This document shows positions 3,245 through 40,705 of a stretch of DNA of 64,000 nucleotides, in pieces. Every line of letters begins with the position of its first letter. Position 1 is the first letter of the stretch. This stretch comes from Octopus bimaculoides. Its lineage: Eukaryota. The notes under the pieces are model-generated. The model worked only from the letters and a program-made list of their open reading frames with translations. It had not been told where the DNA came from and ran no database searches. The stretch is taken from contig NC_068982.1 of the NCBI RefSeq assembly GCF_001194135.2, positions 93,719,171 through 93,783,170 of the forward strand, given 5' to 3'. The position numbers were made by a program, and so were the translations under genes.

Positions 3245-3375
3245 GCATGTATTGATGACAAAATTGACATGGTGAAGTTTCTTGTTGAAAATGGTGCTGA
3301 TGTTGATGTCTGTGATAATGAAGGCTGGACACCTCTTCATGCTACAGCTTCTTGTGGCTTTACTGACATAGCACA
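3245..3375 (+). CDS. PPP1R12A: MYPT exon (probable exon 2), 131 nt, phase 0 to 2, ankyrin repeats
   Basis: tttcag|GCATGT...GCACA|gtaagt; ACIDDKIDMVKFLVENGADVDVCDNEGWTPLHATASCGFTDIA. Confidence 0.95.
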
Positions 3376-15300: not shown

Positions 15301-15686
15301 CATCATGCAAATATGAAAATTAAATTCCTGCAATGTAATTCTGGAAATCACTTAGTTGAAAGAATTTTCCCACTGAAAATTAATTCTATCTCCACACATG
15401 GCTTTGTAATATATTTACTTCTGTGCCCATTTCATTCTATATCCAGTACTATATGTTTCATCCATTTTATGTGATTTATCTAAATTTCTTTTCTCTCTTT
15501 CTCCCCCTCCCCCCTCNNNNNNNNNNNNNNNNNNNNNNNNNNNNNNNNNNNNNNNNNNNNNNNNNNNNNNNNNNNNNNNNNNNNNNNNNNNNNNNNNNNN
15601 NNNNNNNNNNNNNNNNNNNNNNNNNNNNNNNNNNNNNNNNNNNNNNNNNNNNNNNNNNNNNNNNNNNNNNNNNNNNNNNNNNNNNN

Positions 15687-15733
<47 letters not shown>

Positions 15734-18700
15734 TCAGACTTCTTTTTTGCACATTTAATGTGTACAAAAGTAAGGTTGTTTTTTATGATCTTTGTTTATG
15801 GAAGAACAAAAGGAAACTTATGAAAGAGTAAAATTCATTCCTCCTCCCTGCCATGATAGTAATGATTTACAAATACTGTCCTAGTATTTGCTTTTCATCA
15901 GTAGCCAGAGATAAAAATTGAGATGGTTTTATTTCTTTGTAAATCTTTCATTTTAAAGAATTCCTGCATATATTGAATGTAACTCTTTATTTTTTTTATA
16001 GAAGAGAGATAAACATTTTTTTTTTTGTATCAGCTCCAACTCTACAATATTGTTGGGTGGGTGTGAAATTTATATACCTAGTAATTTATTTCTCAAGTGC
16101 TAGCTTGCCACCCAAAATGCAAACTCCCTTCCCTTGCCTTTGTAAGGAGGGGGTGTTTCACTAGCCATATGATATCCCTATTGGAAATAACTATGTTCAA
16201 TTTAGTCAGATTAGTACTTATGACTGCTGCTTTTAGTTAGCTGTCTGCTAACTAGTGATAATACTACTGCTGCCACTACCAACTTTTCTAGGTGAGCTAG
16301 TGGGAGAATAAATAAGTTTTGTATGAGTCACTTTCACATTAGTTCCCTCTAAACATCCACCATCATCCTCTTCCTTTTTCTCACTCCCTTCCTCCACCTT
16401 CTCAGATTGTGAAACAAATAACAAGTGACTTGGGTCCATTTTTCTCCCTCTTTACACAGCATATTTCTTGTGCTTACAAAGAAAAATACATTATTTGTGC
16501 TAAATCTCTGAACAGTGGTAGTAGAAGTTGTTTTGCTATCAAGCATGGCTGGAGAGATTCTACAGCCACATGATACTTAGAATATTATCAGTGATCATAG
16601 TAGCAGCAATGATAGAAAATCTAGCAGCAGTAGCATTGCAGATTTTTGGTATAAGACTATTAAGCCTTATTTTATTGGATTCTAAAAAGTTTTGTAATTG
16701 CTTTTATTTCTTTAATTATTGAAAATTCTTAGTTTTCTGTATCTTGGTCCTTCTTTTAATAATACATGATGTTACTTAGGATAAAAGATCTCATTTTTCA
16801 AAATAATTTAGTTATTTAAAAAGACTGAAAGCATGACATCTGAATACTTTTTTTATTTGAAACATCTGTTATCTTCTACTTTTTTCCTTTCTGTAGAATA
16901 GTTTTATTAGAATGTAAACAAGGTTTTCTCGATAAAAATTAAAATAGCCTAGTATATATATTATTCTATTGAAATAATTATTTTTCTATGTTTGACTCTC
17001 AAGCAAGCAATTTTAACAAACAATTATAGCCACTTTTAATCTTTATAGTCCAACATACCTTAACACAAAGTTCATAATAAATTATACTAGTTGATTTCCA
17101 GTTAGGAATGAAACATTTTGGACACTTTTTCTTATGGTACTTTTTGGTTATTTCATCCCCATTAAAAATTTGGATTATCTCCCCCAACTAAAAAAATTGT
17201 TTAACCCTCGATAAAACAAAAAGAAAAACATGAAAAGTAAAAAGATAAAACATCTCATTGAATCTAATAACATTTTTATAACAAATCATACTATGCCTAT
17301 TGAGGAGACCAAAAGTCAGTGTGTTGAAGTAGTGAATCAAATGGATCTAACCCATTTAATTCAATCTCTTGTCACTGCATAAACTCAATATTTTAGTGGG
17401 GAGATAACCCAATTTTTTAATGGGGGTGAGATAACCCAAGAGGACCATTCTTTTTTGGCAAGAAAGATGGAAACTAATACCATGGTTGCAGTGCACCTGA
17501 GCACTGTATACAATAAACTCATTACTATATTATGGTCATGGGAAGCAACCTTATTAGTGTCTATATTCTGCAGCAGTTGTATGAGCCAGTGTTTTTCTCA
17601 GACATGGGTACATAGGATAGTTGCTTGGGAAGCTCCAGTACTAAACCATGTATGATATGCTTATGTATGTTGGGACCCCATTGCATTGTTTTTCGTGGCA
17701 GGGGACTACAATGTTAAGATACCCCTGGTATTAGCTTTCATATTCTTACTTTCTAAAAAAAGAAAAAAAAAAAGAAAAAATTAAATACAATTGTCTGAGA
17801 CCTTCAATTTTTCATCCCTCATGACAAATCAACTCATTGTAATCCCCCCCCCCCCACTCCAAACTTTTAGCTATTAACATTTGAAGATTCTGGCTCAGCA
17901 GTTTCCTTGGATTCTGGATCATACATTATATTTGCATGTTGGCAAAATACCTACCAATCCGGTTTCAAGAGTATTCAATTATAATGCTGTAAATTTCTAC
18001 GAGTTGTTTGATCTTCAATTGGACCTGATTTAGCGGATAGACCTTTGATGAAAAAAAATACTAGCAATGCCCTCCCTTATATCTCATATTATGTTATACT
18101 GTGTAGTTTTAGATGTGATTTTTTTATTTGGTCAAATGTAACTCAAGTGAAGTTGGGCTGTTGTTTCTAATAGGTCAAGCCACCATGTAATGCTCCTCAC
18201 CTTTTTTGACTTGTGTAACTGTCTGTGTAATCAGTCTGTACCAATAAACATTTGATATCGTGTTTTTCCACTCATCTTTTTATATTAGCTTTTAACTTTC
18301 ATCACTCTGAGCCATTGCTAATAAAAGTTTGAAGTCATTCAGCTTGTGTGACTTTCTTACATCTTTAACATTTAAGCCGGCCATATCTGGCCCAAATATT
18401 CTATTATATAGATTGTACTGATGTATCTCAGCTTTTTTCAGTGAATATCTCTTATTTTAAACAATTATCTTATTTTCTGTTTTAAAAAGACACTAACTTC
18501 AAATATGTCAAAACATATTTTCAAATTATCAGAAGTTTTTCAGAGTTGTTTACAATTTTAATGGATGAGCTATTTACTGAGAGTTTGATAGATCCAATGT
18601 CAACAATTTTTATAATTGTTTTGTGAAAGTGTCATTCATGAAGCATAGTATATAATAATCACTGAGGTATTAAGTTTTTACAGTTTCATTCACAAAAGCA

Positions 18701-21700
18701 GCCTTGTTAAATTTTTATTCTCACTCCTTCCTCTTGCATACAATTTCATATACAATTGTTTTATGATGGATCGTAATTGACATCTGTTTTACATGAATTT
18801 TCTCATAGATTCCGCTTCACCATTTTTTTTTTTGTTTTTACTTGGTTTTTTGCTCATGATATTTCACATGGTTTTAGCTGGACCATTTTAGGATTGGTTA
18901 CATGTCTTTATTACCAGCTGCCATGTTGGTCATAGTGTGTTTATCCTGTAACCAGAATTAAGATAAGGAGTCTCTACTTCATGTCAGTCATGCTAATTAA
19001 TTATTTACATCTATTCAGTTCAAAATAATTTTGTCACTCAGAGGTTTGGTAGTGATTATAATTTGCACGTAGTTTGATATTGTTACGAGGCTTTCTATTT
19101 TAATGCAAGCAATAAACTCCCAGTGAAGTGAGCATACAACTAATTCTTTTCATTCCTAATACTCTTGAGTAAAGTAAGAACTTGCAATATGCCATCTTCC
19201 CTCTATCGTGTATAACACACACTCACATACATTGCATACCACTAATTATGGGTAGTGAAAAAAAGAGAAAAAAATATTTGGAATAAATGCACCAGCATTT
19301 CTTTAGGATATTACAATCCATGGGAAAAGTGTTTTAGTTGGATTTATAATTTTTATATGATACATTGAGAAAGTTCATGAGACCTAGACAAAACAAAAGT
19401 AAGTTCAATAGTAATTTATGACCTTTACTAGTGTAGATCATAAAAGTGCACCTACTGTTAACGTGACATTGTGGAAATCATCTTTTTTTATTCTGGGAAA
19501 TCTCATTTTGATAATGACGGTGTAGTTAAAGAGGTATTCAACTTTACTATTCAGTTTCTAGTGGTGCATAACATTATTGTGTTGTCACAAGAGAACAAAG
19601 TATATATATATATATTAAGCATACATATTTTACTTTTTTAAAAACCCATTTTTATTTTGTATCTTTTTTTTAAAAAGAAAGGAAAATCTTCAAATTTTTG
19701 GATTTTGAGCATTAAACATTCAGGTTCTAGTAATTCTTTTTAGTTTGTGTGTGTGTTTCTTTTCTTTTTTTTTTAAACAGAATTTTAAATTTTCAGCAAA
19801 TGAAAAAGTTTTTAAATCATTTCATTTAGGATTTTGTATTCTATTAATCTTTTGTTTAAGCCATTGGGCTACAGCCATGCAGGGTTTCCTTGAACAAATT
19901 GACCCCAGGACTTATTTTAAGTCTCATTTTATCGAACTGCTAAGTTAAGGTTTACACATAAACCACTTCAGGCTGTGAAGTCTTGCAGAAAGACACCTGT
20001 ACACAATAGGCTTCCACTCAGTTTCTACCTACCAAATTCACTCACAAAACATTGGTTGACCTGAAGGTGCCTTGCAGTGGGACTGAATCTGAAGCCATAT
20101 GGTTGTAAGGCGAACTTCTTAACCCTTTTCATACCAACCTGGCTGAGACTGCCTCTGGCTCTGTAGTACAAATGTCTTGTTTTCATAAGTTTTGAATTAA
20201 AATCTTCCACCAAACCTTAGTCACAATTTGTTCCTAACACCAGCTTATTGCTAAGTTATTTTACTAAATTCTTTGTTATATTTAAAGTTAATTGAAAGAA
20301 ACACAACATCTCAGAATAAATATGGTAACAAAAGGGTTAAGCACATGGCCATGCCTGTGCCTAATGGATCAAGGTAGTGAGACTGTGCCAATGGTTGCAT
20401 GAAGTTCTTACATTGATAGTTTGATGTCAAACATGAAGTAAGCTGCACATGGTTAAGCTCATACACTGTGTAATTTCATAGGGCAAACATTGTTATGAGT
20501 CTGTGCATAGATAGCATTAAATGTGTCACGGCTACCAATATTGCATTTATATTCTGATTGTTTCATATCAACAATTACAAAATTTTGTTATCTTTCGTTA
20601 GACATTTATTGATATGCTGTCTAGTTTATGTGAAATAGAAGGAACATTTGTAGGGAAAATGTAATATAGGTGATTTAAAAAAGTAATAAAACGTTTATCA
20701 ATTAAGCTTGTGCAGTAGACTTAACTGCTTTTCCTAATGTGATCCATACATGCAGGGATGGGAGTGGAGAGGGTTAACATTTACATATGTATAATGAACA
20801 CATTTAATTCTAAGTAAAAAGTGCATGTTCATCATCGTCATCTTTTAACATCCGTTTCTCATGCTGACATGGGTTGGACGGTTTGACTGAGACTGCACCA
20901 GGTTCCAATCTGTTCTGGTAAAGTTTCTACAGCTGAATGCCCTTCGTAATACCAACCATTCTAAGAGTGTAGTGGGTGCTTTTTACATGCCACCAGCAGA
21001 GGGTAATGATCACAGTCAGGCGGCCCTGGTAACGACCACACTCGAATGGTGCGTTTTATGTGCCACTGGTATGGGAACCAGCCAGGCGGCAATACATAAT
21101 AAATATGGTAACTCCTGGTGTCAAAAACCATGAATGTTGCTGACGGACTATAACATGGCAGTTTAAAGATCAGTTGTATCCAGTCTTTTTGAACTGAAAG
21201 ATTCTGGCAATACTCTATTACTTTTGGTAACTTCAGTGTTATGTTAACCCATTTTAACCCAGGTTAACCCTGTTGAAATTTTGAAGATAGGGATAACAAA
21301 CATACGGAAGCGTCCAGTTAACCTTTATTGCAGTAAAGAAACCAAATACAACTGTCCTCAAACGAGGACAGTGGGTTAATATGGGTTAAGGTTGTAAGAA
21401 CTTCAACAAACAAATCAATCATCAACTGATTCCTCATTTCTGGATGTATCCTTCTCTAGAAATAATAATTTGTGTCCATGTGAAGACACAATTATTTGTC
21501 TGTAAAAAAGTAATTACTGTTGCAGAATTTGTGGCATTGGGCTCCATAATTTGTAGTAATTAGTTATATTTATATTTTGAGTTCAAACACTCCCCAAATC
21601 TAATACAAAAATTTCATGTCAAATATTAGGGTTGATTCAATCAACTATACTTCTTCCCCAGCTCACTGGCATTGTGTTGGTGTTAAAAAAAAATGTAGAA

Positions 21701-24700
21701 GTGCTGTCAATGGTTGGCTCTCTGGTATGTTTTGTAATCTCTTAGTGAGCTGTGTTAACAATCTAGTTTTAATGCCATCATAATTTAAATGTTTTTTGTT
21801 GACCTGGATGAATTTGCTGCAAAATATATTGTTCTACCTTGTCTGTGAGGTTAAACATTATGAAATCTAATTTCTTTTCTGTCTTTTATAGTTTTCACCT
21901 ACCACAGGTACATCTACTGTTAAACACCTGACATTAGGTGTTATTTATCCCCATCTCCTTTCTATATTAGTACATTTGCCTCTTATATGCATCAATTTTC
22001 TTACATCACTTGCACTCCACTATCATACTCAGCTCCTCCACTTTCACACTTCCCTCTATTTTTCTTTTTCTGCCAACAAAATTACTTCTCTGAGTGTTTT
22101 TATCTGTTTATATTTTATTAACTTTATATTCACACTAAAACTCCCTCTTGAATTGTGCCACATAGACCAGAGAGATTCTTATTGTATAAACCACTTGTCC
22201 AAGTAGTTGATAGACTTCATGTCAAGGCCTCTGCCATTGCCAACCACTCCTGAATATCTTGGTCTTCTAAAATCCTGATTCATTTCCTGTCTGTTAGATA
22301 CCCAGCTACATTAACCAAATACTTTTCCAGGTGACACTAAAATCTTGCTGATAATAGGTGCTTCAGTTTTCGTAATATTGACTTTTGACTCTAGACCACT
22401 CTTACAAATTTGGAACAAGTAGATTTTTCAATGAAAGTCGGTTATCTGTATATGAGTTTAAGGACATAGTTTTTTTCTTTTTTCTTTTTGCCTATCATTT
22501 CTTACTATAACACGTTAAAATACGGTCTTATTAAACACTTAACTATACACTAAAACCTCATTAAGTGTAGGAGCTTGTTGGTGGTAGCTATAAACCACTG
22601 GTTATTGGTGCACACCACCTACAAATTTATGGATGAGTTCTGAGGTTTTTCATGACACTGCTTCTAGCACTGTTGTGCCTTATTCATGTATCATGTCTCA
22701 TTAGGCATTTAATTGTACAACACTGGACCTGTCATGTTAACAAGGACACCTGTATGAATTCACTTGGCATTCTAAAAATAGCGACTAAATTCTCTTGTAC
22801 ACTTGTTTTAACTCAATTACTCCAGTGTCTTTGACTGTAGCTCTACTCAATCAGGGTAAACCTGGAGTAAAATAAACAACCCCCAAAGCACTAGGTGTGT
22901 TCAAAATGTTTCTCCAGATGGACAAATGCAAAGAAGAATCGCTTGTTCTTAGCTAAGAACATTTTATTTATTTGTTTTCTTCGATTTTTGTCACAAGAAT
23001 ATGGTATTTACAGTTTCAACTTTAGATACAGACCCAAATTGGAATTTGTTCAGCCTAACTTTGTCTGCTATAAACTTTACTATGACACTTTCTATCACGT
23101 TCTTGATTTGCTCTTTCATCTTAAGGTTTCTTTAATTACCCATATCTAATGTCTTCATTTCCTTTTATTAAATGGTTTGATTTGGTCCTGGATGCATGCA
23201 CTGTGCTTATGAAAAGGATGGGAGAGTCAAAGCTGAAATGGTTGTCATTCTTCTTTTCAATCAAGACTCACCTGGTTCTAAACTACAACCTGATTAAATA
23301 ACCAAGAAAGTAACTTGGTGCTTTAGTTGGATGCTCTCAACATCTCAGCAACTTTCCACCAAGGATTTACCGTTTCCATTACTTTCATGCCCTTAATCTT
23401 TTTAATTAAACAATAGCTAAATTGTATGACTAATACAACTGGCTATACCCATTTATATTCATCCATCATCATCTAGTAGTTACACTTCCATGCCTTTTAC
23501 TTTTATGTTAATACAATTTTGAAGTATCATTCTGAAGCTAAACTTCAAATTAATTGCAAGTGGATTCGAAGGTGACAATTTCTGACTACAACAATCATAA
23601 GAATCCACTTGCAATTAATTTGAGGTTTTAGAAAATTTATAAATGAGCATCTTGCTTATTGTTTATTTATATCTCTCTTATAAACATGAGGCGTTATGCT
23701 TATTAGCTCAAACTTTATCCTTTCATTATTTAGTTTATAGGCTCACTGTATTCAGTTCAAATGGGAGTATACTTTGTTTTTCATCCCTCCAGAGTCCATA
23801 AAATACTAAACCATCATGTACATCATTGTCGAGTAAAGAGAATGTATTTTCTTTCCACCTTGTTTACTTTAACATGTTTTTTCACCCTTGAAAATTGCAT
23901 TTAACACTCAAACAAATTGCTAAAATACATTTAGACAGCCTTCATAATGTTGACCATTCAACTGTGGCTCATTACTTTTACTTGAAACATTTGCATACTT
24001 TAGGTTGGTCTGTTCTTCTGAAACCGTCACTGTATTGGCCATGCAAAAATGAGTTAACATTGTGTTACAACACCTGTGATCAAAACAGCAAATATATTAA
24101 TAAAAAAAATAGTATACAGAAAAGTTTTACATTTAAGTTGCAAGCAATTTACCCCTGCAGTTGTTCTAGCTGAGTTTAAACCAAATCAGTCTTAGAAATC
24201 TTGTTTGATTGTGAAGATCATGTGTATATTGCCTTATTCTTCATTACCCATTCTCCCCCATTCTTTGAACTCGTTAACTCATTTAGAAGTTAAAGCCATT
24301 AATAAACAGCAACTATATAATCTTAATGTGATTTTGCTTTTCTACCTTGCTTATTTACTGATAAGGGTTATCTTCAGAATTTATTTTTTTCAAAATATAA
24401 TTTGATTTCTCCATATTTGATGGCAATTTGACTTTTGAATAATGTAGTAGCAAGTATATTTGTTGCATCCACATGTATTTCCTAACAAGTAAACCATGTA
24501 GCAGGTGTTTTGGAATGCTACTTGCCAGCAAAACAGTGACAAATAAAGTCTGAACATGTGCTTGTTTAATTTTCAACAATCTAAGACTTTTCATCTTCAC
24601 AGCTAGCTACTCTTTAGAAGGGACAAAATCTTAGTGACTTTAAAAAAATTTAAAAAGTGAATTATCTTTGGGAGGCACTTGTGATATATACACACACACA

Positions 24701-27700
24701 CACACACACAAACGTTAAATGTTCTACTAATGAAAATAAAGCATTACCTTTATTGATAAAAAAATTGTTTTGAGCCTAAAAATAATGCATTAAATACTTG
24801 CAATAAATCCCATGTTACCTATGTGAAATTTACTAGTATCTACTACTACTTGAGTTGAAAGCCACTATTCTAAGCAGAAGGTTATGGAAATGCAATATAC
24901 AAATGAGTGGAAATAGAATATATAATATTTAACATAAAGATTACATAAATTCTTGTCTGTTATAACCTTTCCAAAGACAAAAAAAAACAACAAAAAAAAA
25001 CAAAACAAAACAAAAAACAAATATGTTTCTTACATAAGAGGTGGCATGAAATGAGAATGGAGAGTACAAATGAATTATTGTAGGCTACTTTGCAGATGTC
25101 CTCAATACTTGCTCATACTGTAAAAACACATGTGAAAGTACGATGCTGAAGTTGATGTTGGTTGAAATATTTAACAAAATATGCCAATTAATTTTAAATG
25201 GTGTATATGTGTGTGTTGTCTGCAACAAACTTGCCAATGTAAAAAATAAAATTATTAATTTTTATGCAGCATATAATTCTTTAATCTTTGTCAGAATTTT
25301 AGAACCTTTTAAGTGGTATTTTTTTGCATGCACTTCTAAGAGTGTGGTTCGCATTCTTTTTCTTTCTCGTTGTTGTTGGAACAATAGCAAAAAAAAAAAC
25401 AAAAAAAAAAAATCCTTCTAGGTCAGAACAATTAGCCAGGGTTTCTGACATAAGTTTAGTGTTGCCAGTTTGATGGTATTTATATTAGCATAATCTCTGA
25501 GAGGGACCAGTTGGCACAGAATTTACAACTGTCTGTATGTAATCAATGAGAACACCTCCCTAAAGTTTTTGGCACAGGCTATTAATATGGTATGAAAAGG
25601 TTGGTTTAGACGTAATTTCTATTCTGAGAAGCTGTGCGTTATTCTGATTTTCTAATCAAGAGTGCTTATTTATTTGGTATACTTTTGAAAGAAGTGTATT
25701 TATAGTTTATTAGTCATTTTAAAGGGGAGCAAGTATGCAAATATTTACATCATATTTGAGTTTATTAACGTCAGGTTTAATATATCTTTATGCAATTTTC
25801 ATGAGTTACCTTCGATTTTTATCAGTATGTTACTGTTGGTGTTTTTTTTTTAGTACTACATTATTTAAATCTTCATATCTGAAGAAAGATTTAGAATGTC
25901 TAAAAAAAACCTGGTATTAATCATAATTCATATGTTAGCTTTTTTTGTTTGTTAATTTTCATTTTTTGTATTCTCAAAAGAGTATTGACCCCAACCTTCT
26001 CTAATGGCCAGAAGTAAGCTTTACTCAGTTCATTGTCTATGAAAGAGATAAAAAGGTCAAAGAAAGAAGACCAATAGAAAAGATGTTAGCACATTTTATT
26101 GTACAAGAACACACAGTAACAGCTTCAAAATTTTGGGATTCTATTTTTTCATTTGGTATTTATTTGTTATATGATAATAGAAGGTGGCTAAGTACTGTAA
26201 TCATCAGTTTTGACTGAATAATCATACAGTGAATGTTCCATCATACTTTTTTGTTAGGTAACACCAAATGAATATTCTGTCATATGTTTTTTCCAATTAA
26301 ATAACACCAAGGTGAATAAAATATCAAGCCATGGCTTTGTATCATATAACAAAATAGTTTACTACTTTATGTTCTTCAATTAACAAGTTAACTTCTCATT
26401 TATATAGTGTCTTAATTATAAACTACTCTTCATTATTTTATTAAATCTGTAAATTTGTAATTAAGTCTGTAAATATATTTGGATTATTGCATTATAGTTA
26501 GCTTTCCTCTTCAATTAAAACACACATCCTCATTGCTTTAAGGTCCACTTTTCCATGTTCACATGGGTTGGACAGAATTTGTTAAAACTGACTATGTGGT
26601 AGTCCATAGTAGCAAGTATAGGTGCTATTATCATAGCACCTCCCTGCATTCCAAAGACATGATTTCTTTTATGTCACTGAAGTTTGCTGTCAGACTTTTA
26701 CTTTCTGATCTGTCCTGCATGGTTGCACCTACTGAGAGATTACTCTCTCTCCAGCATAACTAGGTCACGAGCAGGGTTTTTTTTTCTTGTAATAGATTTA
26801 AAAATAATATTTCCAGAATTTTCGTAATCACACCAACAGTATGTATATATGTGGACACTACTGGAGGGCTGTTGACTCTCAAGAGTTCTTCTACTCTTTG
26901 ACAGGTTTTGTATTGCATCCAGCTGGATGTTCAAATAGCAAATTAACCCTTGGTGGAGTTGCCAGTTTCGTTGCCATACACCTGACCATAGAACAGATTG
27001 TACTTGGTTACATGTTACTAGTAGCGCTGAGTGATCTACTAAGAACAATGCAAGGCAGTTCTTGGAGACAAGTGGTTAATGATGTTTGTGTGCAGACAGC
27101 ACATTGGCAGTTTGGTTTGCTAATGGAGGATGTATTTCATGATAGCTTTGGTTTTCTTGAGAATCTTTTAGAAAATTGTCGCTTGATATGAAACATTGCC
27201 ATTTGACAGCCTTCTCTTGCTTAAAATGGTTATTGTTGTTGTTTAACTTTATGTTGGCTCAAATCAAGTTCACCTATAATTAAAGGCAATTCAGCTGACT
27301 ATTCCATGTTTTTACAAAGTTTTTTTGGACTATATCATCTAATTTATCCTTCTTTTAAAAACAGTTCTGATTTGGAGTTCTATCTGTTATTTCTTACAGG
27401 CCAAATGACCACTCATGCCAAATGCAGTGCTGAATGTGTTACTTTATACATAATGAAAATGATACTATTATTGGGAGATAAGTTATTAAGACAGTATGGT
27501 CTGGAAAGAGAGCAATGGGATTGGATCTTTTTAGTCATAAAAAGTGTGTGTTATGATTAAGTTTGATAAATCAATGATAGTGAGAAATAGTCTATATAAC
27601 CTGCTGTAGAATATTATCAGATACATGAAATTTTACACACACACATGCACACACACTCTACAAAAAAAAAAAAAGGCCAGTTTTTACTTGCTTGAATCTT

Positions 27701-30700
27701 CGTTTAAAGTCCATTTTCCATGTTGGTATGGGTTGGACAGATTAACAGGATTTTATGAGCCCTAACAGCTGTGTCAAACTCCCGTCAGTTTTGGTATGGC
27801 TTCTACAGCTGGATGCCCTTCCTAACACCAATCACTTTAAAGCATGTACTGGGTGCTGTTTTCATGTTACCAGCAGTAAGTGTACCAGGTAACTTCTAAG
27901 GCAAAAAAAAAAAAAAAAAACAGGAAAGGGAAAAGGAAAAAGCTCACTTGACTAAGTGGCAGGGGCATTGGTTTATGAATAATAGTTTTATAGAGCAATT
28001 AAGTTTTACATATTTGCTAAAAGAACTACATTAACTTTGACTAATTGTGTACTCTTTTAGCTAATAAATAAGACTCAACTGTAATTTTATGTTATGATGT
28101 CAGATTTATAGATTTGTTTTTCCCTTTGAAACTATGAAAATGTTTCATGTAACATCAACTAGTTTTATTCTATTTTTTTTTTTCTAATTGTGATCTACAA
28201 TATACCCATTACATAATGCAGTGAAATTATTTTCTACATGTGGAAATTAATCATTTGTAGTGTCTGCAAAATAAACATTGGTGGCGTTTATTATTTATTG
28301 TTGTTTTGAGTAGGGCTGAATGGTAGAGTGACAGATAAAATGTTTTGCAGTTTTTTGTCACGTTTTTTTACATTCTGAGTCAAATTCTATTGGAGTCAAA
28401 TTTACTATTCAACTTTTCAAAGATGATAGAAGTACCAATTATTTGGGTCTATCAAATTGACTGGACTGCCGTAGGATTTTCGAGCGAGATCGTTGCCGGT
28501 GCCCCTGGACTGGCTCATGTGCGGGCGACACATGAAATCTTTCGAGCAGTATCGTTGCCGGTGCTCCTGGATTGGCTCATGTGCGGGCGACACATGAAAT
28601 CTTCCGAGCGGGATCGTTGCCAGTACCCCTGGGCTGGCTCTTGTGCGGGTGACACATGAGGTTTTTCGAGCGAGATCGTTGCCAGTGCTCCTGGGCTGGC
28701 TCTTGTGCAGGTGACACATGGAATTTCTTCGAGCGAGATCGTTGCCAGTACCGCCTGACTGGCCTTCGTGCGGGTGACACGTAAAAGCACCCACTACACT
28801 CTCTGAGTGGTTGGCGTTAGGAAGGGCATCCAGCTGTAGAAACTCTGCCAAATCAGATTGGAGCCTGGTGTAGCCATCTGGTTTCACCAGTCCTCAGTCA
28901 AATCGTCCAACCCATGCTAGCATGGAAAGCGGACGTTAAACGACGACGACGAAAGGGGGTTGGAGATGGTATTGTCAGTTAGAAATAATTTTTGTTATAT
29001 TCTAATGTTTGTTGTAAAATTGAAATTTGCGTGGAGAGTAGGAAGGACTGAGCTACATACGCACACATTTTCTCTCCCATAAATGTCTAGAGTTTAAATC
29101 CCCCCCCCTCCCTTTTTATGATGCTTTTGAATTTTGCTGAAACTAACAAATAATTACAAGTCATTTTCTAATCTGTTTGGATGCTTAAAACTACTTGAAA
29201 TTCCATAAGAAATCAGGAAATATTTTCTGGCCAAGCCCTGTTGTTTTTGTATGGTTATTGTTTTAAATTGTCTTTAAACTCACAGCTCTGACAATGAACT
29301 TTGAACCTTTTAAAAAGCTTATACAAGTTGACACTTGAGATCATAATGGTGAAGTTATTAGGAAAGGATTTTTTTTTTTACACTTTTGTTGGTGTTTGAA
29401 AATTTAGCCACTTATAAGCATTTGTTTATTAATCCTATTAAGTATAGTCTCTGTTCTATGATAGATTAAAAGAAATAAAAGCTCTCAACCGTTATTGTAT
29501 GTAAGAACCTTTATAGCCAAGGTACTACTCCCTCCGTGTTTTTTACTGTCAAAAGTAATTTAATATATTTTGTTAGTAAAATGCTTATAGAAAGTTAATG
29601 GACAAATAACTAGAACTATTTACACATAGGTTACTTGGCTGAACTGAACTGTTAAGATTTTGTTTATTTCCTGTTGTAATCTATTTCTAAACCTGCACCT
29701 TTCATATCCTGCTCTGTATACTTTTCAATCAGAATCGGACTTGAGCTGCTGCTGAAATTCTTCTAATGCTACTTGTTGAAATATTGTGTATTTTTTTAAT
29801 GAAGCTATGTACAGGTTGATAGTCTGTGTTCTGCTGCAGGCAGCAGCATATTGTGTCCATGAGTATTGCCTTTTTATAGAAACTGAAGATTAAAATTTTA
29901 ATTTTAATTTCAATTTTAATCTGTCTAGGGAGTCAATGTGTATATTATTAATCCATTTCAAGGTGCTAATACTTTTATAGAAGTTGACTGGTGGGCTGCT
30001 AATCTTTCTAGTGAGAGGAGAGGTTGCTAATCTCTCAGGTGTTAATAGTGGTTCTATGGCTAATTTCTCTTGGCAGTTGTTCGTTCTGTTGCTAATCCTC
30101 CTGAGAGGAGTTGGTGGGTATCTTGCTAATTCTAATGTGGCTTCATTCCAGGTTCTGTCAGCTCAGCTGGTAGATTTAACTAACTACTTCATCTAAGATT
30201 ATTTTCTTTCTGTATTCTACAACAAAGTAGCTGCCAATCTCTCAAGCTGCCAATCTCTCATAACATATTCTTAGTTGTCTTTATTATGTTGCATGTTATG
30301 TGCTATAAATTTTATAATGCCACACTGTCCAACAATAAAGAAAATATATTCATAATTGTTGCCTCTGTACTATAGATATAATTGAGTAAAGTGAACTGAA
30401 ACTTACCAACAGTTATTTATATATCATGATAGTGATGAATACAAAATTGTTTATTCAAAAGTAACTCTTGTTTATGTTTCTTATGTTTATATTTAATGTT
30501 ATAAATTTTTTCTCACCTTCTGTGCTACAGGTGAGTCCTGTGTTATTTTTCTGAAGATATATTTTCAGTTGGTAGTTTATTGAAACTTTTAAAATATTAT
30601 CTATAACATGGTATTTGTTATCACTTGAGAAAGCCCAATTATGCTTACGTTAATCTTCATTAGTGTTTTATATAGTGTTTTGTAATAAGATAGATATTTT

Positions 30701-33700
30701 TTCCTCTATGTATGTAGCCTTTCTGATGTACTGATGTAAGAGAGTGATAGAGATTTAAAAAAAAATTGTCTTAAAGTAGTTAGGATTGAGCATGAGTCTA
30801 AGAATTACTATTTCTATTTTAGATATTGCAATATGGTTCTGTTGCTTATTGGAATTATTTACTTAAAATGTTACGAGCCACTTAGAAGAGATTCCTCTCT
30901 TGTGAGAAAGATGGGTAGGGAAGCTTTCCATGAGTAATTGTAATATGGGGGCATGTACTGTAACAGCGCGTCTCTGCATGTATTGGTGATTTCCTACTAC
31001 TCCTGGTGGACAACATCTTTGTACCACTCAAGTGACAGCCTTCCAACCCAGGAGTTCTCAACCATTTTTTTATCTATGGACCTCTTTGACCTCTATTTTA
31101 TTCTGGTGGACTCCTAAAGCCATTCAATATTTAAAAACTGGTTTTATAGAAACTGCTTTCAAAATTCTTATTTTGTTTTTCACACATTAAACTGTGTAGG
31201 TTGGAATGTGTAAATCATTAGAGACAGAAACCTAGCAATTTCTTGCAGTACATACTGATACATACATCTAAAGCAAATTTTTTTCAGACTATTGTTGTTG
31301 ATCCCTAATTTACTATTTTGCTGCATGGACTCCCAAAAATCTTAAATGGACCCTCAGGGACCATATGGACCTCAGTTTAGAACCACTGCTTCAACCTATG
31401 GGTCTATTTGGGTACTCATTGCTGGTGAGGGTTGTACAAGTGCAAATCCTATCTCATCCTGTTTTAGTTGCCTCTTACAACACTATTAATGTTGTTGAAT
31501 CAATATTGTTATACAACACCGTTTCTCTTAAGTAAAAGTGCATAGAATCACATACTTTGTTGTGATGAGTTCAAGCTATTGCAGAATTGACTTAAACTTC
31601 TTCCAGTGAAATCATTATTTACATCAGCATTCTATACTGACATGGGCTGGATGAATCATGATGGTCTAAGTCAGATCTTATTTAGAGTTACTGCTCCCTG
31701 GATGTGTCAGGAACAACATTTCACTCAGTTGTTCCATTCTTAGTATAGTTTCTATAGCTGAAAGTCATTCCTAGTATCAGCCACCTGAAAGACCACTGTC
31801 TGTTTCATTTTTTTCTGGCATGTTGGGTATTTTATAATTGCCTTATTTGATCTTAATTAATCTCATAAGAATTATGTAACCCGATGAGAATCCTGTGCCC
31901 ATGAGTACTGGACTGTTGTATGACAGCTCACCACTTATAAATGGTGGCTGCATTGACTGTATTAGTTCTAATAGACCTCCTTGAAATTATGGATTACAAC
32001 AATTTCTCCACTTCAAATGTTATGTTACATGATAATTTTGCAGAAACTGTTGATAAATTTATTGTCCATTTGGAAAGATATCTTACATTCATGAAGTTAG
32101 ATGAGAAGGATAAATTAGATTTTATTTCTCTTAGTTTATTTTAAGTTGGGAAGATACACTAGCTAATTACAAGAATGAAATAAAGTGGCCTGAAATTACA
32201 AAAAGTGGTGTTTGATGATAGCATTACATACTATTCAAGAGCTAAAAATTTCATTGCATCTAAATATACTTGCAGCAAAAATATACACAGTGAATGAATA
32301 AAACTCTGTTCATTGAAACAATAGACAGGACAACCTATTAATGACTTTCCCAGGTCTCTTAAACCAATATAATATTCTAAATTTTCTTATTTATGGATGA
32401 GACGACACAAATGCTTATTGGCAAGGACTTAACATGGAAGTCAATTAAAAGGCAGCAAAACTGGGAAACCTTTATATTAGAGGATCTTGTTTCTTTAGTC
32501 TGGATGGAACAGTTCAGGTGGCCATAGAGGATGATCTGTTAATAAACAGTGCCTTAATTGAATCAGTTGTGAGCAGCTTAACTGTTGTAATTAGTTGTTT
32601 TTGATTTCTGAAAACATGGTGAAAAAGATTGGTATTGAATCACCCTCTAAATCAACTTAAATGATGGAAACAAGCTAAACCTGATTGTAAAGACAACACC
32701 TAACAATTGCTACCTTGCATCTGAAATATCTCTTGAGAATCTCTAATTTAATCACAATTCCAGTCATTTCAGATGGAATTTAAACTACACCCTTGACTTT
32801 GCTATCTATGTTGTTCTGAAATCGAAGAGCATGTTTGTGAAAGTTTCAAAACTCCAAATATTTACTAACACAAGCATAGAAATTTCTACACAAGTAATAC
32901 CCATACATTGCCCATCCCACTTCAGAATTGCTCATTTAAAGACTGACTGAATTCATTAAAGTTGAAGTTAATAAACTACTAGTTGAGGGAATAATTACAC
33001 ATCCAAAAAGTTGTCATGGCATTCTCAAGCTGTTTTAGTCAACAAAACTGGTGGCGAAAGACATTTAGTGGTTGACTATGTCTGCTATTAATAGATACAC
33101 ACAGCTAGATGCATTTCCCATTCCACTCATTAGTGATGTTTTAAGCCAAGTTCACGGAAATCATCATTTTAGTACTGTTGACTTTTGTTCAGCATATTAT
33201 CAAAAGCCTTTGCCTTCTCAGAAATATTTCAGCCTTTGAAGCAAATAATTATCTTAATTTATGCAATTGCCTTTTAGAGTAACAAATGGAATGTTGATTT
33301 TTATCAAAGTAATGAGAGAAATTGTTAAGGATTTAAAAAGGGTAGTTATTTGATGTAGGATATGTGGGGAAAATAGGATCCATGATCTATATTTGGACGA
33401 TTTTCTATGAAATAAACAAAATAAATGTTATAAAATAAGAAAAATTATTTGGTTTGGAAATATATATTGTGAGAATTCTTTGTGTGTGTGTGTAGCCAAA
33501 CAGACAAGCATGCATGCATATGTATGTGTATGTATGTATGTATTATATGAGGCAAAGAATTCTCACTTTAATGAATATTAAATCATTGCTTTCTAGAGCA
33601 TTAAATATGTAGCCATCTCATAGCATTTGGACATAATTCTACACTGGAAAATTCAAATGATTTTCTCTTTAATTCTTTGATATTTCCTGATTGTAGGCTT

Positions 33701-36700
33701 CTTTTTGAAAATTGGTCTATCTTCAAAAAGTATTTAAGGAAAAAAGATCCCTTTGTTAAAAAAGGTTTTCTTTTACCACCATAATTCAATTTGCCATATA
33801 GAGGCATAATACAGTCTGAACAAGCTGTTTATTTTGGACTTTTGAATCTAAAAGTCAGTACCGTGTTGTGTCTGGAGTCACTTTGAGCCTAGAGTCTGGT
33901 GCTTCATGTTCACTGAATTGTGTCTCTTGTCTTGTGCCTGTTTGTCTCATTCTTTTATCAAGTGGTTCTTCTAAGAAAACTTGATCTTGTAATTACTAAT
34001 TAAGAAACCTCTCTCCTTTGTGTATGAAAATGCAGAGGAAATAATTTTACTCAGATACATTTACAAAACTACTACAATTGTTGGTGTAGGTTTATCCTTC
34101 AGAGAATCAACATTCTTTGGCATTACCACTTGGGTGCCTTTGGTAGAGTCCGCTCTGTTGCAAGCATTTGAGCCAAGTCGGGGTTTGTGAATGGAATTCA
34201 TGTTAATTTTTGAGAACTAATTCATGTTAATTTTTGAGAACTAATTCTGGCTAAGCCAAACGTAGTAAATACTAATCTCTGGCAATCAAGTTATCCAGAT
34301 GGAATTTGAACCACTTAACTTTTGGCTGCCACACTCATACTGTGGAAAGTTTTTTGTTGTTTTTAGTTATCCTTGTACTGAACATTGTAAATTTGTAATT
34401 CTGATTTCATGTTCTTATGTTATTCTCTGAGAATATACTTTCACATAGTTGATAATAAATCCATTTTGGCAAAATTCAACGCTCTTTATATGAGATAAAG
34501 CTTTTCTAATTCTTCTGAAAATTGATTGCTTTTATATTTAAAATCTGTTTAGAAAAAATTTGTCTCTGAGGTTAATTTAGATCTTCCAGTGTTTATTATT
34601 AATATATAATATATATATGAGGATTATTTATTTTTAGTTTTACTTTGGAAGTTTAGAATTGGCAGTTTATAAATTTGGCACGTTATATGAATACTTTAGG
34701 TTGCTGGACCCCCTTCGGTCATGACTGACCATGGGATTGCACCTAGAAAGTTCCTCTCCCAGGCACAAGTCTGGGCAAGGTTGCTTATAGAAGACCAGCA
34801 GTCGCCCATGCATACCAGCCTCCCCTCTCCACGCCACCAGTGTTATCCAAGGGAAAGGGAAAGGCAAAGGCCGATACAGCTTGGCACCTGTGACGTCGCA
34901 ACTCATTTCTACAGCTAAGTGAACTGGAGCAACGTGAAATAAAGTGTCTTGCTCAAGAACACAACACGCAGCCCAGCCTGGGATTTGAACTCACAGCCTC
35001 ACGATTGCAAGCGACGCTCTAACCACTGAGCCATGCGCCTTCACACTTTAAGTTATATTTTAACTATCTGTAACAAAAGAAATTGATCTTTACTTTGAAA
35101 CTGGTATACATGCTTATCTTAGTCCTTGTAACAATAACTTGATTCTGTAAAAGACTATTTTTGTAACATACTAGTGTAAATTATATCAGCAGTAACTGAT
35201 AACTATCAGTGTATATAGAGATAATATTTGCTTTATAAACTGTACTAAAAGGAGGGATGAGGACAAAAAGGAAAAATGGAGTTTTACAATACAGACACTG
35301 CTAATCTTGCCCACTTTATCACAGTGAGGTTAAAGAATGCAAATGAATCCATGTCACTCAGAGTAATTATTAGTGTTAGTGATATTGTTTTATTGGCTCA
35401 TCTCTCTTAAATTCATGTTTATTTTTCTGGTTAGATTAAAAAAACAAATGTGGGGAGGGCAGATAATTTATTATCTCTTATTGTGCCTTTTGAATTGAAC
35501 TAGCTCTTAGTCACCCACTTACTCTCTAGTCAAAAGGGGTTGAGCATTTTGAATTATTGATTTTTAAACAGATGACATTAGGAAGGACATCTAGCTGTAT
35601 AAACCAGTCCAAAGCAGACACTTGAGTATGATGTGCATTGTACTCTAGTGACAAGGACTGTAGTCTTTAACTCATTGGTTCCTTGTCAAACTGCCAAATG
35701 CACCCCAGTATAGAACAGATGCTAAATGATGATTTTAAGTTGAATTTCAGAAAGCAGCTTTTTTTTAAAGTATAAATTTGTTATGCACACTTCAAGTAGT
35801 CAGTCTTTAGCTTTCTTGGTAGAAGTTACAAACCAATTTTTTCTTATCAACCATATGGCCAATCTACATGTAAAGCTTGAACACTTTTTAACCCAAGTTC
35901 TATCACCTGATCAGTAACCATTCCTTTCCCAGTCCTCCTCTCTCCTTTGTGTATGAAAATGCAGAGGAAATAATTTTACTCAGATACATTTACAAAACTA
36001 CTACAATTGTTGGTGTAGGTTTATCCTTCAGAGAATCAACATTCTTTGGCATTACCACTTGGGTGCCTTTGGTAGAGTCCGCTCTGTTGCAAGCATTTGA
36101 GCCAAGTCGGGGTTTGTGAATACTTCCCGCCTTCCTGTCTTTTGACTATAAGAGAAATGTTTTAGATAGTTTGAAAAGAACCATTTGTTTCAGTCCTCTC
36201 CAGCTATAGCTGGGTAGTTACAAAGTTTGCATTGCAGCTATTTGGTTTCATGTTCAAACCCACTGTACTGTATCTTGGGCAGGAGTCTTCTAAGCAGGAG
36301 TAACTGACCTTGATATTGTAGGGGTTGAAAAGCTTACAATACTTAAAGGTTCTAGCAAAGCATTTCTTAATTAGTTGCCTGGAAGCTCCTAATTATGTTA
36401 GTTGAAACTTTTAGATTAAATGGACAATTGACCCAAATTATCCATGCGGACCTGAAACAAAGATTAGATCTGATGTCACTTTTAAACCAATAACATATGA
36501 TCTAAGTTAACCAACAGAGGCAGGCCCTAAGTCTAGAAAGCCATCTTGAATTTGTCTCATTTCCTGTTACTTGATCTCCAAATACCTGATGAGCTAGTTT
36601 TGCTCTTTAAGTCTATGAAACTCTAAAGTGCATGGAGACTATTGTTAAATAATATCTATTCATACCTACAATTTATATGACACAATGAGGCTTTTGTGTG

Positions 36701-37236
36701 TGTGTGTGTGTGTGTGTGTACTTAATGAAATATGGTGAGAGATTGAAAATATTAGTGTTATTGCAATGATATGGTTAGTGTCCAGTAACAGAGGTCTATG
36801 AAAACATGACAAATTTTTTAATTAAGGCTATATGATGTATTATACTAAGACTTTAACTCTAATAACTTCATAAACAAGATGCCATGACGAAATTCAATAG
36901 GATCCTTGTATTGAATTTTTGTTTTTTTAAGCTGTTGTGCACACACACACACTAGATTGACCAAGGTTGTATGTTGAAGTGGATAATGTCAATCTCCCTG
37001 CTCTCAGTTATTTGGTTCAATTTCTGTACCTAAAATTCAAGTAAAAAAAAAAGAAAAAAGAAATTGCAGGCCTGGCTGTGTGGTAAGAAGTTTGCTTCCC
37101 AACTACATAGTTTGAGGTCTCCTACTGCATAGCAAGTGTCTTCTACTATAGCCTCAAGCCAAACAAAGCATTGCAAGTGGATTTGGTAGATGGAAATTGA
37201 AAGAAGCCTGTTGTGTGTTAGTGTGTGCATGTGTGT

Positions 37237-37271
<35 letters not shown>

Positions 37272-39083
37272 TGTGTGTGTCTGTTTGTTTCCCATCACCA
37301 CTTGATGGCTGGCACTGATGTGTTTATGTCCCTGTAACTTAGCTGTTCCACAAAAGAGACCAACTGAATTAATACCAGGCTTAAAAATATAAATGCTGTG
37401 GTTGAGTCATTCGACTGAAAGTTCTTCAAGGTGATACCCCACCATGACCACAGTCTAATGGCTGAAACAAGTGAAAGATAAAAGATATGGCTTCTATTTA
37501 TTTTCTTAATGGTCTCTCATGTTTATAAAGTTATGAAGGTTTTTCTTTCTTGTTCTTTTTTTTTGTTGTTGTAGTATTATAAGAAGTATTTAAGAAAACA
37601 AGCTCTTAGAATCCAAATCTTAAGCACATGCATTTTAACCTGTTCATTTTATGTTAAGAATGATTGGGTACTAAAATAATTCAATTCAAATTCAGTCAAT
37701 TTTCTTACATGCAAAATCTGATTGAAACCTCCAGACTATTTATAAATAATGCAAGAAAGTTGTTTTTGTTTTTGTTTTTTTTTGTGAGTGTGTGTGTGTA
37801 TTTGAATGAGAGGAAATAAAAATAAGAGTAAAAATAAGGAAATAAAATGTTCAAAAAGTGACTAGTGTGTCTGTTTTTGTTTCCCAACATATTTCCTTCA
37901 GTTAACACTACAATTACTATTGTTTTTAAAGATCTGGATCTCTCGTGTTTACTCTGTTAATGTGTAATAAGGATATCTTCTACTTGTTTCACACATTGGC
38001 CTGTGGCTGTGCCAGGGTACTACTTTGAAGGGGTTACTCACACAAGTTGATCCCAGTGCTTATTTTTAAGTCTGGTACTTAGGTCTGTCAGCCTCTTTTA
38101 CTGAGCTGTTAACTTATGGGGATGTAAACAAACCATTAATTGTCAAGCAGTGGTGGGACATGGACAGACATATTTTTTTTATTAAAGCTTCAAAATTATC
38201 ACAGCTGTTACTCAGTTTCACGTTCCTGTCCATCAGACAACTGTGATAAATACTCACCTGAGTGTGTGTGTATATGTATATATATTGATGTACAAACCGT
38301 TATCTACTAGAGTGTACCGACAGCATAAAAATTCAATGTTTTTAACACCTGTGCTTCATTAGAGTTTTATACCTATTTCCTAGCTGTTTGTAAAAATGGA
38401 ATTTTTTTTTTATATAATAGTATTTGTATGTTTGTGTTTTGGGTTAGGAGCAATAAAAATGTCTTTTATTACAGCAGCTATCACCGCTAGTTTTGTAATG
38501 GGATTTTGAAATTAAGCTTTGGATTATCAATGCTAATTAGTAATTTATCTTTTTTAAAGTGCTATTAATTGGTTTTATGGTAATCTGTTTTGCAATTGCT
38601 GCCAGAAACACTTATACATGCATTACATTAATTTTAACTTGTTGGGCAAGATAGGGTTTGAAAATCTAGATATTCTCTTCTGAATATTTAGAACTACTTT
38701 TTCTGTTTTTTAACATAGCACACTTTCTTCTGTTAATCACTCAATTGTGAAATGACTGTATACTGTATTCAGTTCGGCAACATTGTTTTTTCCCCTTTGG
38801 GTTAGAGCATTGACTAAAGGAAAGTTTAAAGTCAAGATCTTGCTGGTGGCTGTTCAAGATTTGTATTTCGTAGGCTCCATCTTAATAACATGTAATTTTT
38901 GTGTTCTTTTTGTATTAATGCCCATAGAGAAGAGAGAAAGCAAGCTAAACAAACCTGAAGTTTCTGTTTCTTTTCTCTGCATAAATACTAATCTGTTTGC
39001 CTTTCTGTTATCACCTGTTGTGATAGATTAGTAGAAAAGAAATAGAATGAATGTATGTCTCACCCAATACCTGTTTTATATCC

Positions 39084-39138
<55 letters not shown>

Positions 39139-40137
39139 CAGTCGTATACTGTCAACTTAATGTGACAGTCCCAATAAGGGAATCATACTGCTGCTATTTA
39201 GCCCTAGGATGCTGGATTGCTTCCTGTCGACCTTGACACATTTCCTGTGTCCTTATATTTGCGAGGGGGAAACAAGCACCCCCACCCAGCCTAGTCTGCA
39301 TTCAGGGACATGCTTAAGTCTCTCTGTGAGATTTATAATTAGATCATTTCTAATTTTTGTAATCAGTGAATGTGTTTTCACTAGAAATATATATATTTGC
39401 GAGAGGTTGACAGGCATCTTCAGCCACCTGGTTGTGCTACTCCAGGCTGATGATGAGCAATGACTCAGAAACATGTCCCTGAATGCAGACTAGGCTGGGT
39501 GGGAGTGCTTGTCTCCCCCTTGCAAATATAAGGACACAGGAAATGTGTCAAGGCTGACAGGAAGCGGTCCAGCATCCTAGGGCTAAATAGCGGCAGTATG
39601 ATTCCCTTATTGGGACTGTCACATTGAGTTGACAGTATACAACTGCTTTATCGTAACACTGCTGCTTAAGTCTCTCTGTGAGATTTATAATTAGATCATT
39701 TCTAATATATATATATATATAAATATACAGGGATTAGCAAATTGAGTTGCTTCTCCAACATACTGAAAATTTAGAAATAGCAGTCAAAGAACTACTGATT
39801 CCAAACTACAAATTTTCTCTAAAGTGGATGGCGATATTTATGGCACACATAGAACAAAAAACCGGAGGGAAAAGCGTAAACAAGCCTTTGACCAGGGCTG
39901 GTAAGCTGAGGGGCTGCACCAGACTCCAGCTTCCAAATTTGTAGTTTGGAATCAGTAGTTCTTTGACTGCTATTTCTAAATTTTCAGTATGTTGGAGAAG
40001 CAACTCAATTTGCTAATCCCTGTATATTTATAATGATAAATAGTCTTACCGATAAAGGTTTTTTTCATACTGAACTACTTGGCAGGATTGTTAATTATTA
40101 ATTCTATTATTAATTGACGATTCTCTGCCCTTATTCT

Positions 40138-40179
<42 letters not shown>

Positions 40180-40627
40180 GGTATGTAAAAAGCACCTGTT
40201 GAGCATTGGGCCTCATGAAAGCAATGTGCCCAGTGTTGCATAACTGGCATGTAAAAAGCACCTTTTGAGTGTTGGGCCTCACAAAGACATCTGGCACCTG
40301 TCAAGCGTTGGGTCTCACAGAGGCAATGACAAATGACTGAGCCCTTTGGCAATATGCCATGTTTGAGAAGGATACCCATTAAGCCAAGTGAAATTGTAGT
40401 CGTGGTAGATTCTGGAGTCATGCAAGTGGCACCCGTGCTGGTGGCCCATAAAAGCACCCATTACACTCTTGAAGTGGTTGACGTTAATAAGAATATCCAA
40501 TTGTAGAAACCATACCAAATGAAGCTGGAGTCTGGTGCAGCCCCTCAGCTTACCAGCCCTGGTCAAACTGTTCAACCCATGCCAGCATGGACAACAGATG
40601 TTAAAAGATGTTGATGATTTTATACAG

Positions 40628-40705
<78 letters not shown>

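Follow-up and report, generated by a model that had tools for sequence, protein, structure and literature searches.

Documented cases of recursive splicing come from flies, whose few very long introns commonly use it, and from vertebrates, in which it is rare. The zero-nucleotide-exon ratchet points of Drosophila genes such as Ubx, kuz, Bx and luna were reportedly described by Hatton in 1998, Burnette in 2005, Duff in 2015, Joseph in 2018/2021 and Pai in 2018, and vertebrate RS sites with RS-exons are said to have been described by Sibley in 2015. More than 500 recursive sites are known in flies (PMC8605326), high-confidence recursive sites are present in 63% of fly introns longer than 40 kb (PMC6110457), and 99.5% of fly ratchet points, whose pyrimidine tract is exceptionally prominent, carry TT at positions -5/-6 (10.1101/006163). 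A survey of mouse brain counted 19-20 sites, corresponding to <0.06% of transcribed introns >5 kb, and these reside in first or second introns >51 kb of genes >294 kb, with Lsamp and Ank3 as examples (PMC8797253). The recursive sites of both flies and mouse favour AGGTAAGT (PMC8797253), and under current fly and vertebrate models (PMC8605326) a cryptic RS-exon is needed whose closing donor, downstream, is the weaker one and in flies stands at a distance of ~50 nt. Low-level use is seen at many human intronic AGGTs, and many of the human sites classed as dual-specific show it with no annotated product (PMC10809524).

How does a candidate from an octopus compare with these systems? The preliminary description of the locus was not aware of recursive splicing having been described in cephalopods, and our literature search agrees in that it returned no recursive-splicing paper on cephalopods. 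No report that combines recursive splicing with cephalopods, octopus, molluscs or other lophotrochozoans was found in the papers searched, two of the co-occurrences with molluscs having been judged by title only and octopus giving none. The co-occurrences of recursive splicing with cephalopod or mollusc terms that were opened proved to be mere reference-list items.

The window, meaning the whole 64,000-nt stretch of Octopus bimaculoides DNA that was analysed, contains part of an octopod PPP1R12/MYPT homologue, assigned by protein homology, and the candidate site lies on the sense strand of this gene. The features that define the host intron are the following:

3245..3375, + strand: upstream coding exon (exon 1) of the MYPT ankyrin region, which ends in GCACA; translation ACIDDKIDMVKFLVENGADVDVCDNEGWTPLHATASCGFTDIA
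3376-3381, + strand: native donor of the upstream exon, ACA|GTAAGT, read from the sequence
3376..41836, + strand: intron of 38,461 nt, phase 2, delimited by tblastn exon boundaries and the retrocopy junction
41837..41955, + strand: downstream coding exon, (Q)YLISTSANIAAVNNDGDLPLDICEENKMEKLLLEEMNRQ, with acceptor ttttgatag| and donor AAG|GTAAGT

A tblastn comparison with human MYPT1, which counts as a lead only, matched exon 3245-3375 with an E value of 6e-18 and placed this exon and four more, starting at ~41837, 43653, 46147 and 47901, in colinear order along the human protein. The intron is internal, and the two exons that flank it align to human MYPT1 residues 78-123 and 124-163 in the ankyrin-repeat region. 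Since the upstream exon ends at 3375 and the next exon begins at 41837, the intron spans 3376-41836, and its length of 38.5 kb falls within the range of tens of kilobases that characterizes the long introns of fly-type ratchet points. An assembly gap of 170 N is located inside it at 15517-15686. The donors of the octopus MYPT gene are of the GTAAG type and favour GTAAGT, which the GTGAGT of the candidate site does not match, and three of them share the unusual form CA|GTAAG.

Independent support for this gene model comes from a second octopus locus. The best protein match to the spliced window exons is "LOW QUALITY PROTEIN: PPP1R12A-like [Octopus bimaculoides]" (P0047) at 87% amino-acid identity, the next-best named mollusc being Lottia at 72%, and the PPP1R12A-like match is encoded in an intronless 589-bp stretch of chromosome CM046618.1. 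This DNA is colinear with nine window exons from 3242 to 60039 at identities of 91-100%, is 94.6% identical over exons 1-5 and reaches 96% nucleotide identity over exon 3245-3375 alone. It reads ...ACACA|ATATCTT... at the junction, such that exon 1 is set directly on exon 2. The CM046618.1 locus is a processed retrocopy that amounts to a fossil cDNA, and it confirms the 38,461-nt intron. The source mRNA of the retrocopy carried no insert from the 3376-41836 intron. Repeat families are common to the window and the retrocopy-bearing octopus DNA, and together with the retrocopy they assign the window to an octopod, in support of the cephalopod origin assumed in the preliminary description. As a route to an orthologous intron the retrocopy P0047 was rejected, being intronless and usable for the gene model only. 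The upstream exon end GCACA|gtaagt at 3375 and an intron of 38 kb, as originally proposed, are thus upheld by homology and by the retrocopy junction, at a length of 38,461 nt.

The candidate site is built from the following parts, and the + strand reads ...aaattttttctcaccttctgtgctacag|GTGAGTcctgtg... across it:

30493..30516, + strand: candidate branch points: TTAAT, whose A at 30496 precedes the AG by 34 nt, and CTCAC, whose A at 30515 precedes it by 15 nt, inferred as yUnAy matches
30512-30516, + strand: CTCAC branch-like motif, read from the sequence
30506..30530, + strand: pyrimidine tract and acceptor ttttttctcaccttctgtgctaCAG, acceptor score 8.8 bits
30531..30536, + strand: donor GTGAGT immediately 3' of the AG, 9.65 bits in its local context
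30531..30735, + strand: putative cryptic RS-exon of 205 nt, the sole plausible one, frame-shifting, with donor GAT|GTAAGAG at 30736, 1.54 bits

TACAG at 30526-30530 abuts GTGAGT at 30531-30536, and both of these elements, together with CTCAC at 30512-30516, stand exactly where the preliminary description had put them. The juxtaposed acceptor and donor ctacag|GTGAGT (30530/30531) has the form by which fly-type ratchet points are recognized, and a U1-complementary donor, AGGTGAGT in its variant with G at +3, combined with a high-scoring acceptor, is the pattern of vertebrate RS sites. Positions -20..-5 of the acceptor comprise 13 pyrimidines out of 16; -6 is C, -7 and -9 are both G, -4 is A, and no other AG occurs from 30497 to 30528. 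Joining exon 1 to 30531 does regenerate ACA|GTGAGT as had been claimed, and this ligated donor scores 2.95 bits versus 2.08 for the native ACA|GTAAGT. The proposed division of the intron into pieces of ~27.2 and 11.3 kb likewise holds at 27,155 + 11,306 nt, the first length being approximate because the 170-N gap falls inside that piece, and the site is positioned at 71% of the intron length rather than near the midpoint. Downstream of the site, the donors at +41 and +80 score below -2, and the first donor above 0 bits is found at +205 (30736) and is comparable to the real donors of the gene. When the putative RS-exon is read after exon 1, the sequence CA|G TGA places a stop at the second codon, which rules out a coding cassette exon. 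An in-frame TAA lies 8 codons before 30530, and no frame opens from upstream of 30530 into exon 2.

Is a composite of this quality to be expected by chance? The bare octamer AGGTRAGT occurs twice on the + strand of the window, one instance being the true exon-2 donor, and three times on the - strand, and it is unremarkable by itself, since Markov models trained on the intron predict 0.6-1.2 occurrences per intron strand. AGGT sites were therefore compared by their full context using an acceptor matrix (-20..+1) and a donor matrix (-3..+6), which are approximate PWMs based on published metazoan consensus frequencies, with thresholds that were fixed after the site had been seen. On this scale the composite of 8.8 + 9.7 = 18.5 bits ranks at the top of the 360 AGGT sites on both strands of the window, the runner-up scoring 11.5, and antisense copies of AGGTGAGT lack the tract (e.g., -4.3 bits at 38257). 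Acceptors this strong make up 0.1-0.25% of AGs in the window, and the real acceptors of the gene, at -4.6 to 4.9 bits, all score below the candidate's 8.8. Markov simulation gives 0.003-0.01 composites of at least this score per intron, and a weight-independent criterion of >=13/16 pyrimidines plus YAG, satisfied by 2% of intronic AGs, gives about 0.01-0.035, such that the overall expectation amounts to 0.003-0.04 per intron (p about 0.003-0.04). A scan of 0.5 Mb of strand-sequence from other animal genomes contained no site at 18.5 bits, the maximum being 17.1. The composite is a real local outlier, and the observation is confirmed. Extrapolation of ~0.005 per 38 kb to a multi-Gb genome rich in long introns would nevertheless yield hundreds of chance sites.

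One further feature bears on this estimate:

30512..30535, + strand: perfect 7-bp inverted repeat, CTCACCT (30512-30518) and AGGTGAG (30529-30535), with a 10-nt loop

The hairpin is part of the minimum-free-energy fold (-8.9 kcal/mol, z -2.1), and in RNA its stem pairs the tract and the branch-like motif with the AG|GUGAG junction, such that AG and GUGAG would be sequestered alike. The upstream arm, which on the minus strand reads AAG|GTGAGA, accounts for 6 of the 13 tract pyrimidines, and the base rate of comparable hairpins is 0.2-0.6% per 7-mer or 2% per 12-nt block. Because the hairpin pairs the tract with the donor-like motif, the two are not fully independent, and for this reason the chance estimate has to be tempered. 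A speculative gating idea is that, were the site used, the first splicing step would strip off the upstream arm and thereby free the donor.

The surrounding sequence is unique. No second copy of the site region was present in the window or in the octopus DNA examined, no repeat family or tandem array was found over the site, and neither Pfam domains in the ORFs near the site nor a transposable-element protein or terminal repeat around it could be detected. The nearest element common to other octopus DNA, at 31048-31264, begins at least 517 nt downstream of the site. An origin from a repeat or transposable element is rejected as far as testable on the grounds of unique sequence without repeat or Pfam domain, and a structured RNA was set aside upon finding no Rfam match in the window. 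Searches for related sequence elsewhere gave little: a 25-mer spanning the site is not in metagenome_contigs, exact look-up of four ORFs located no more than 3.7 kb from the site returned no record, a protein search with the concatenated flanking ORFs had no match, and metagenome loci related to exons 2 and 3 came from distant animals only, at no more than 79% amino-acid identity. Locus L001, ranked second among several equally close protein matches to exon 1 (84% amino-acid identity), has the exon alone in common with the window, and the introns do not align. The first 10 kb of the L001 intron contain just one moderate AG|GT site.

We give a probability of about one half to the reading that a good acceptor and a consensus donor have come to adjoin here by chance and without selection, and that the composite has at most sporadic, self-correcting use. 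The intron 3376-41836 would be removed essentially in one step. On occasion exon 1 may instead be ligated to 30531, regenerating ACA|GTGAGT, which is predicted to be as good as the native ACA|GTAAGT, and splicing of this donor to 41837 would yield the normal mRNA after all. Use of a strong cryptic acceptor of the AG|GTRAGT kind would be harmless, the donor being regenerated, and an acceptor of this kind can therefore persist without being selected against. We infer that such a composite is the one kind of strong intronic acceptor that selection need not purge, and that the site has no dedicated function, its occasional use correcting itself.

Several lines of evidence argue for this reading of a fortuitous and tolerated motif. 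The AGGTRAGT octamer is present at chance level and composites are expected to be numerous genome-wide by chance; recursion is rare where long introns are the norm, as in the mouse (PMC8797253); hallmarks of fly sites, i.e., the TT, GTAAGT and a close downstream donor, are missing and a hairpin covers the junction; and the retrocopy mRNA carries no sequence of the 3376-41836 intron. Against it stand the 7-bit lead over the 360 AGGT sites of the window, a score that beats the gene's own acceptors and has no equal in 0.5 Mb of other animal DNA, and the placement of the site on the sense strand, in unique non-repeat sequence and within a long intron. The spliceosome, moreover, would probably see a site of such strength.

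An alternative that we consider possible, yet tentative, is a genuine recursive splice site, by which exon 1 would first be spliced to the AG at 30530 with release of a 27.2-kb lariat, followed by splicing of ACA|GTGAGT to 41837 to remove the remaining 11.3 kb. Recognition may use exon definition of a cryptic, always skipped RS-exon at 30531-30735, and loss of the first lariat would remove the upstream hairpin arm and free GUGAG for U1. In its favour is a strong acceptor joined to a perfect intronic donor on the sense strand, expected by chance 0.003-0.04 times per intron. The regenerated donor, scored at 2.95 bits, does not fall behind the native one (2.08) and surpasses the only downstream cryptic donor (1.54), which fits the donor-competition rule (PMC8605326). 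The putative RS-exon would be out of frame and run into a stop at once, a usual trait of such exons, the intron length lies within the range of fly recursion, and the absence of an insert from the mature mRNA represented by the retrocopy is consistent with two-step removal. These points are offset by the absence of TT at -5/-6 and the purines at -4, -7 and -9, by a GTGAGT rather than GTAAGT donor, by an RS-exon of 205 nt versus about 50 nt and a position at 71% of the intron, off the midpoint, and by a hairpin that occludes the junction. In addition, recursion in large genomes like that of the mouse is very rare and limited to much longer first or second introns.

The weight given to these opposing points depends on the regime to which the octopus belongs. 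The octopus genome is vertebrate-like in its size and in the commonness of long introns, and because of this likeness the vertebrate regime was weighted more heavily. By analogy, if octopus followed a fly-like regime, a site of this strength would be real almost for certain, and about one in ten such sites would be real under a mouse-like regime. It is improbable that the fly-like regime applies to octopus, and the missing fly hallmarks weigh slightly against it. The motif could permit two-step intron removal and is a candidate for it; recursive use of the site is a reasonable hypothesis, not a finding. That the site is a ratchet point of the octopus gene both genuine and conserved is marginally more doubtful than genuineness alone, and less likely is a gating role in which the 7-bp hairpin would keep the internal donor hidden for as long as the upstream arm has not been lost in the first splicing step.

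Less probable again, and in our view unlikely, is that the site borders a cryptic or poison exon that has escaped annotation, or that it serves as donor to an alternative, non-coding first exon with its end at 30530. In the poison version, a 205-nt exon at 30531-30735 with donor GAT|GTAAGA would be included in a minority of transcripts, whose stop at CA|G TGA would direct them to nonsense-mediated decay. Such exons have a precedent in that 46 of the 84 mouse AGGT sites with junction reads were unannotated exons and 19 were recursive (PMC8797253), and the acceptor at the octopus site is strong and the 30736 donor matches real donors of the gene. However, the exon is missing from the mRNA that gave rise to the retrocopy and the adjoining GTGAGT should beat the weaker 30736 donor, and the alternative first exon is left with no reading frame into exon 2 and a TAA in frame 8 codons upstream of 30530.

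Very unlikely is the suggestion that the palindrome CTCACCT...AGGTGAG is a hairpin-element remnant or a DNA motif (E-box-like CAGGTG) whose splice-site look is a by-product, the tract being pyrimidine-rich because it is the complement of the GGTGAG arm. In favour of this, the perfect 7-bp repeat with its 10-nt loop is uncommon (0.2-0.6% per 7-mer) and its upstream arm supplies 6 of the 13 tract pyrimidines. Against it, no other copy exists in the window or the octopus DNA examined, neither an Rfam family nor a transposable-element protein or terminal repeat accompanies the site, and the fold z-score is only -2.1.

What would a functional site mean? If true, it would give the lophotrochozoans their first documented case of such a site, it would indicate that recursive intron removal predates the protostome-deuterostome split, and it would place a known mechanism in a new lineage at the level of a phylum, which is interesting and would not surprise splicing specialists. 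Cephalopods are protostomes whose genomes approach those of vertebrates in size and in intron length. The presence or absence of ratchet points in them would reveal which of two factors, ancestral bilaterian capacity or genome architecture, is the driver of recursive splicing. A single motif cannot settle that question; it does provide a concrete site, through the junction 3375-30531, and a recipe for genome-wide scoring.

Among described systems, the fly ratchet points resemble the octopus site in having an acceptor and a donor that meet at AG|GT, in sense orientation, within a long intron, in a regenerated donor as good as the native one, in an inclusion product that is out of frame and in an mRNA that bears no trace of the event. 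They differ in sequence, since the octopus site has TC instead of TT at -5/-6 and purines at -4/-7/-9, and the TT rule is maybe specific to fly U2AF. They differ also in the donor, which is GTGAGT in octopus versus GTAAGT, in the distance to an acceptable downstream donor (+205 versus about +50) and in the host, a large-genomed lophotrochozoan for which an intron of 38 kb is not exceptional. Fly-type ratchet points are further marked by an acceptor|donor core that is ultra-conserved among related species.

The RS sites of vertebrates share with the octopus site an AGGT core, a strong tract, a U1-complementary donor, the possibility of an RS-exon with a premature stop and a large genome with many long introns. 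The mouse and human sites are, however, deeply conserved and are found in first or second introns >51 kb of brain-expressed genes >294 kb, whereas the octopus intron is internal and measures 38.5 kb. Finally, the dual-specific splice sites of Duan et al. 2024 (PMC10809524) are, like the octopus site, intronic AGGTs that could act as acceptor or donor, and they differ from it in their tendency toward a weaker fit to both consensus motifs than that of single-use sites, the octopus site being strong in both.

A processed, intronless retrocopy of the PPP1R12/MYPT gene lies on chromosome CM046618.1 (~18.83 Mb), at 10001-11075 of the fetched O. bimaculoides DNA designated L002, as seen by comparison with window exons 3242-60039. 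The retrocopy, whose annotation is 'LOW QUALITY PROTEIN PPP1R12A-like', matches the spliced window exons 1-5 at 94.6% identity and has small indels. It serves as a fossil cDNA of the window gene, and matches to it place additional MYPT exons at the following positions:
~49919-49983, additional MYPT exon
~52081-52243, additional MYPT exon
~53654-53699, additional MYPT exon
~59935-60039, additional MYPT exon

Two runs of N interrupt the window:
15517-15686, assembly gap inside the 38-kb intron (3376-41836)
50913-51233, assembly gap
The first is followed directly by a (CT)n microsatellite (15687-15729), and because it falls within the intron the true length of the latter is uncertain; the second is flanked on both sides by TG/TA-type dinucleotide runs. 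A 125-aa minus-strand ORF at 12335-12712 has a weak Transposase_1 (mariner-type) match (E 4.8e-4, below Pfam's cutoff) and is probably a decayed DNA transposon within the same intron. Interspersed repeats at four places belong to families that also occur, at 66-74% identity, in unrelated O. bimaculoides DNA (L002 1000-1372 and 15231-15423):
31048-31264, interspersed repeat
37073-37487, interspersed repeat
52779-53049, interspersed repeat
62513-62682, interspersed repeat

The candidate recursive splice site joins TACAG (30526-30530) to GTGAGT (30531-30536). A tandem array 1.7 kb upstream (28472-28780; ~5 copies of a GC-rich 62-nt unit, 80-87% identity) gives long spurious ORFs on both strands. 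At 30511-30520 the minus strand carries AAG/GTGAGA, complementary to the branch-like CTCACCTT and a good donor-like motif in antisense, such that two GGTGAG motifs face one another within a span of at most 25 nt. At 27866-27883, ccag/CA/GTAAGTGT forms a near-miss composite, preceded by a 12/16 pyrimidine tract, in which 2 nt separate an acceptor-like CAG from a perfect GTAAGT donor and whose use would insert CA. A long T-rich tract (14/16 pyrimidines) at 37759-37791 abuts GTGAGT without an AG, which shows that tract-plus-donor pairs are easily produced in this T-rich intron.

Three of the five MYPT donors examined (3376, 43813 and 46292) carry A rather than G at position -1 and take the form CA/GTAAG(T/C); these donors depend entirely on intronic U1 complementarity. 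The donor regenerated at the candidate site, ACA/GTGAGT, would match this type.
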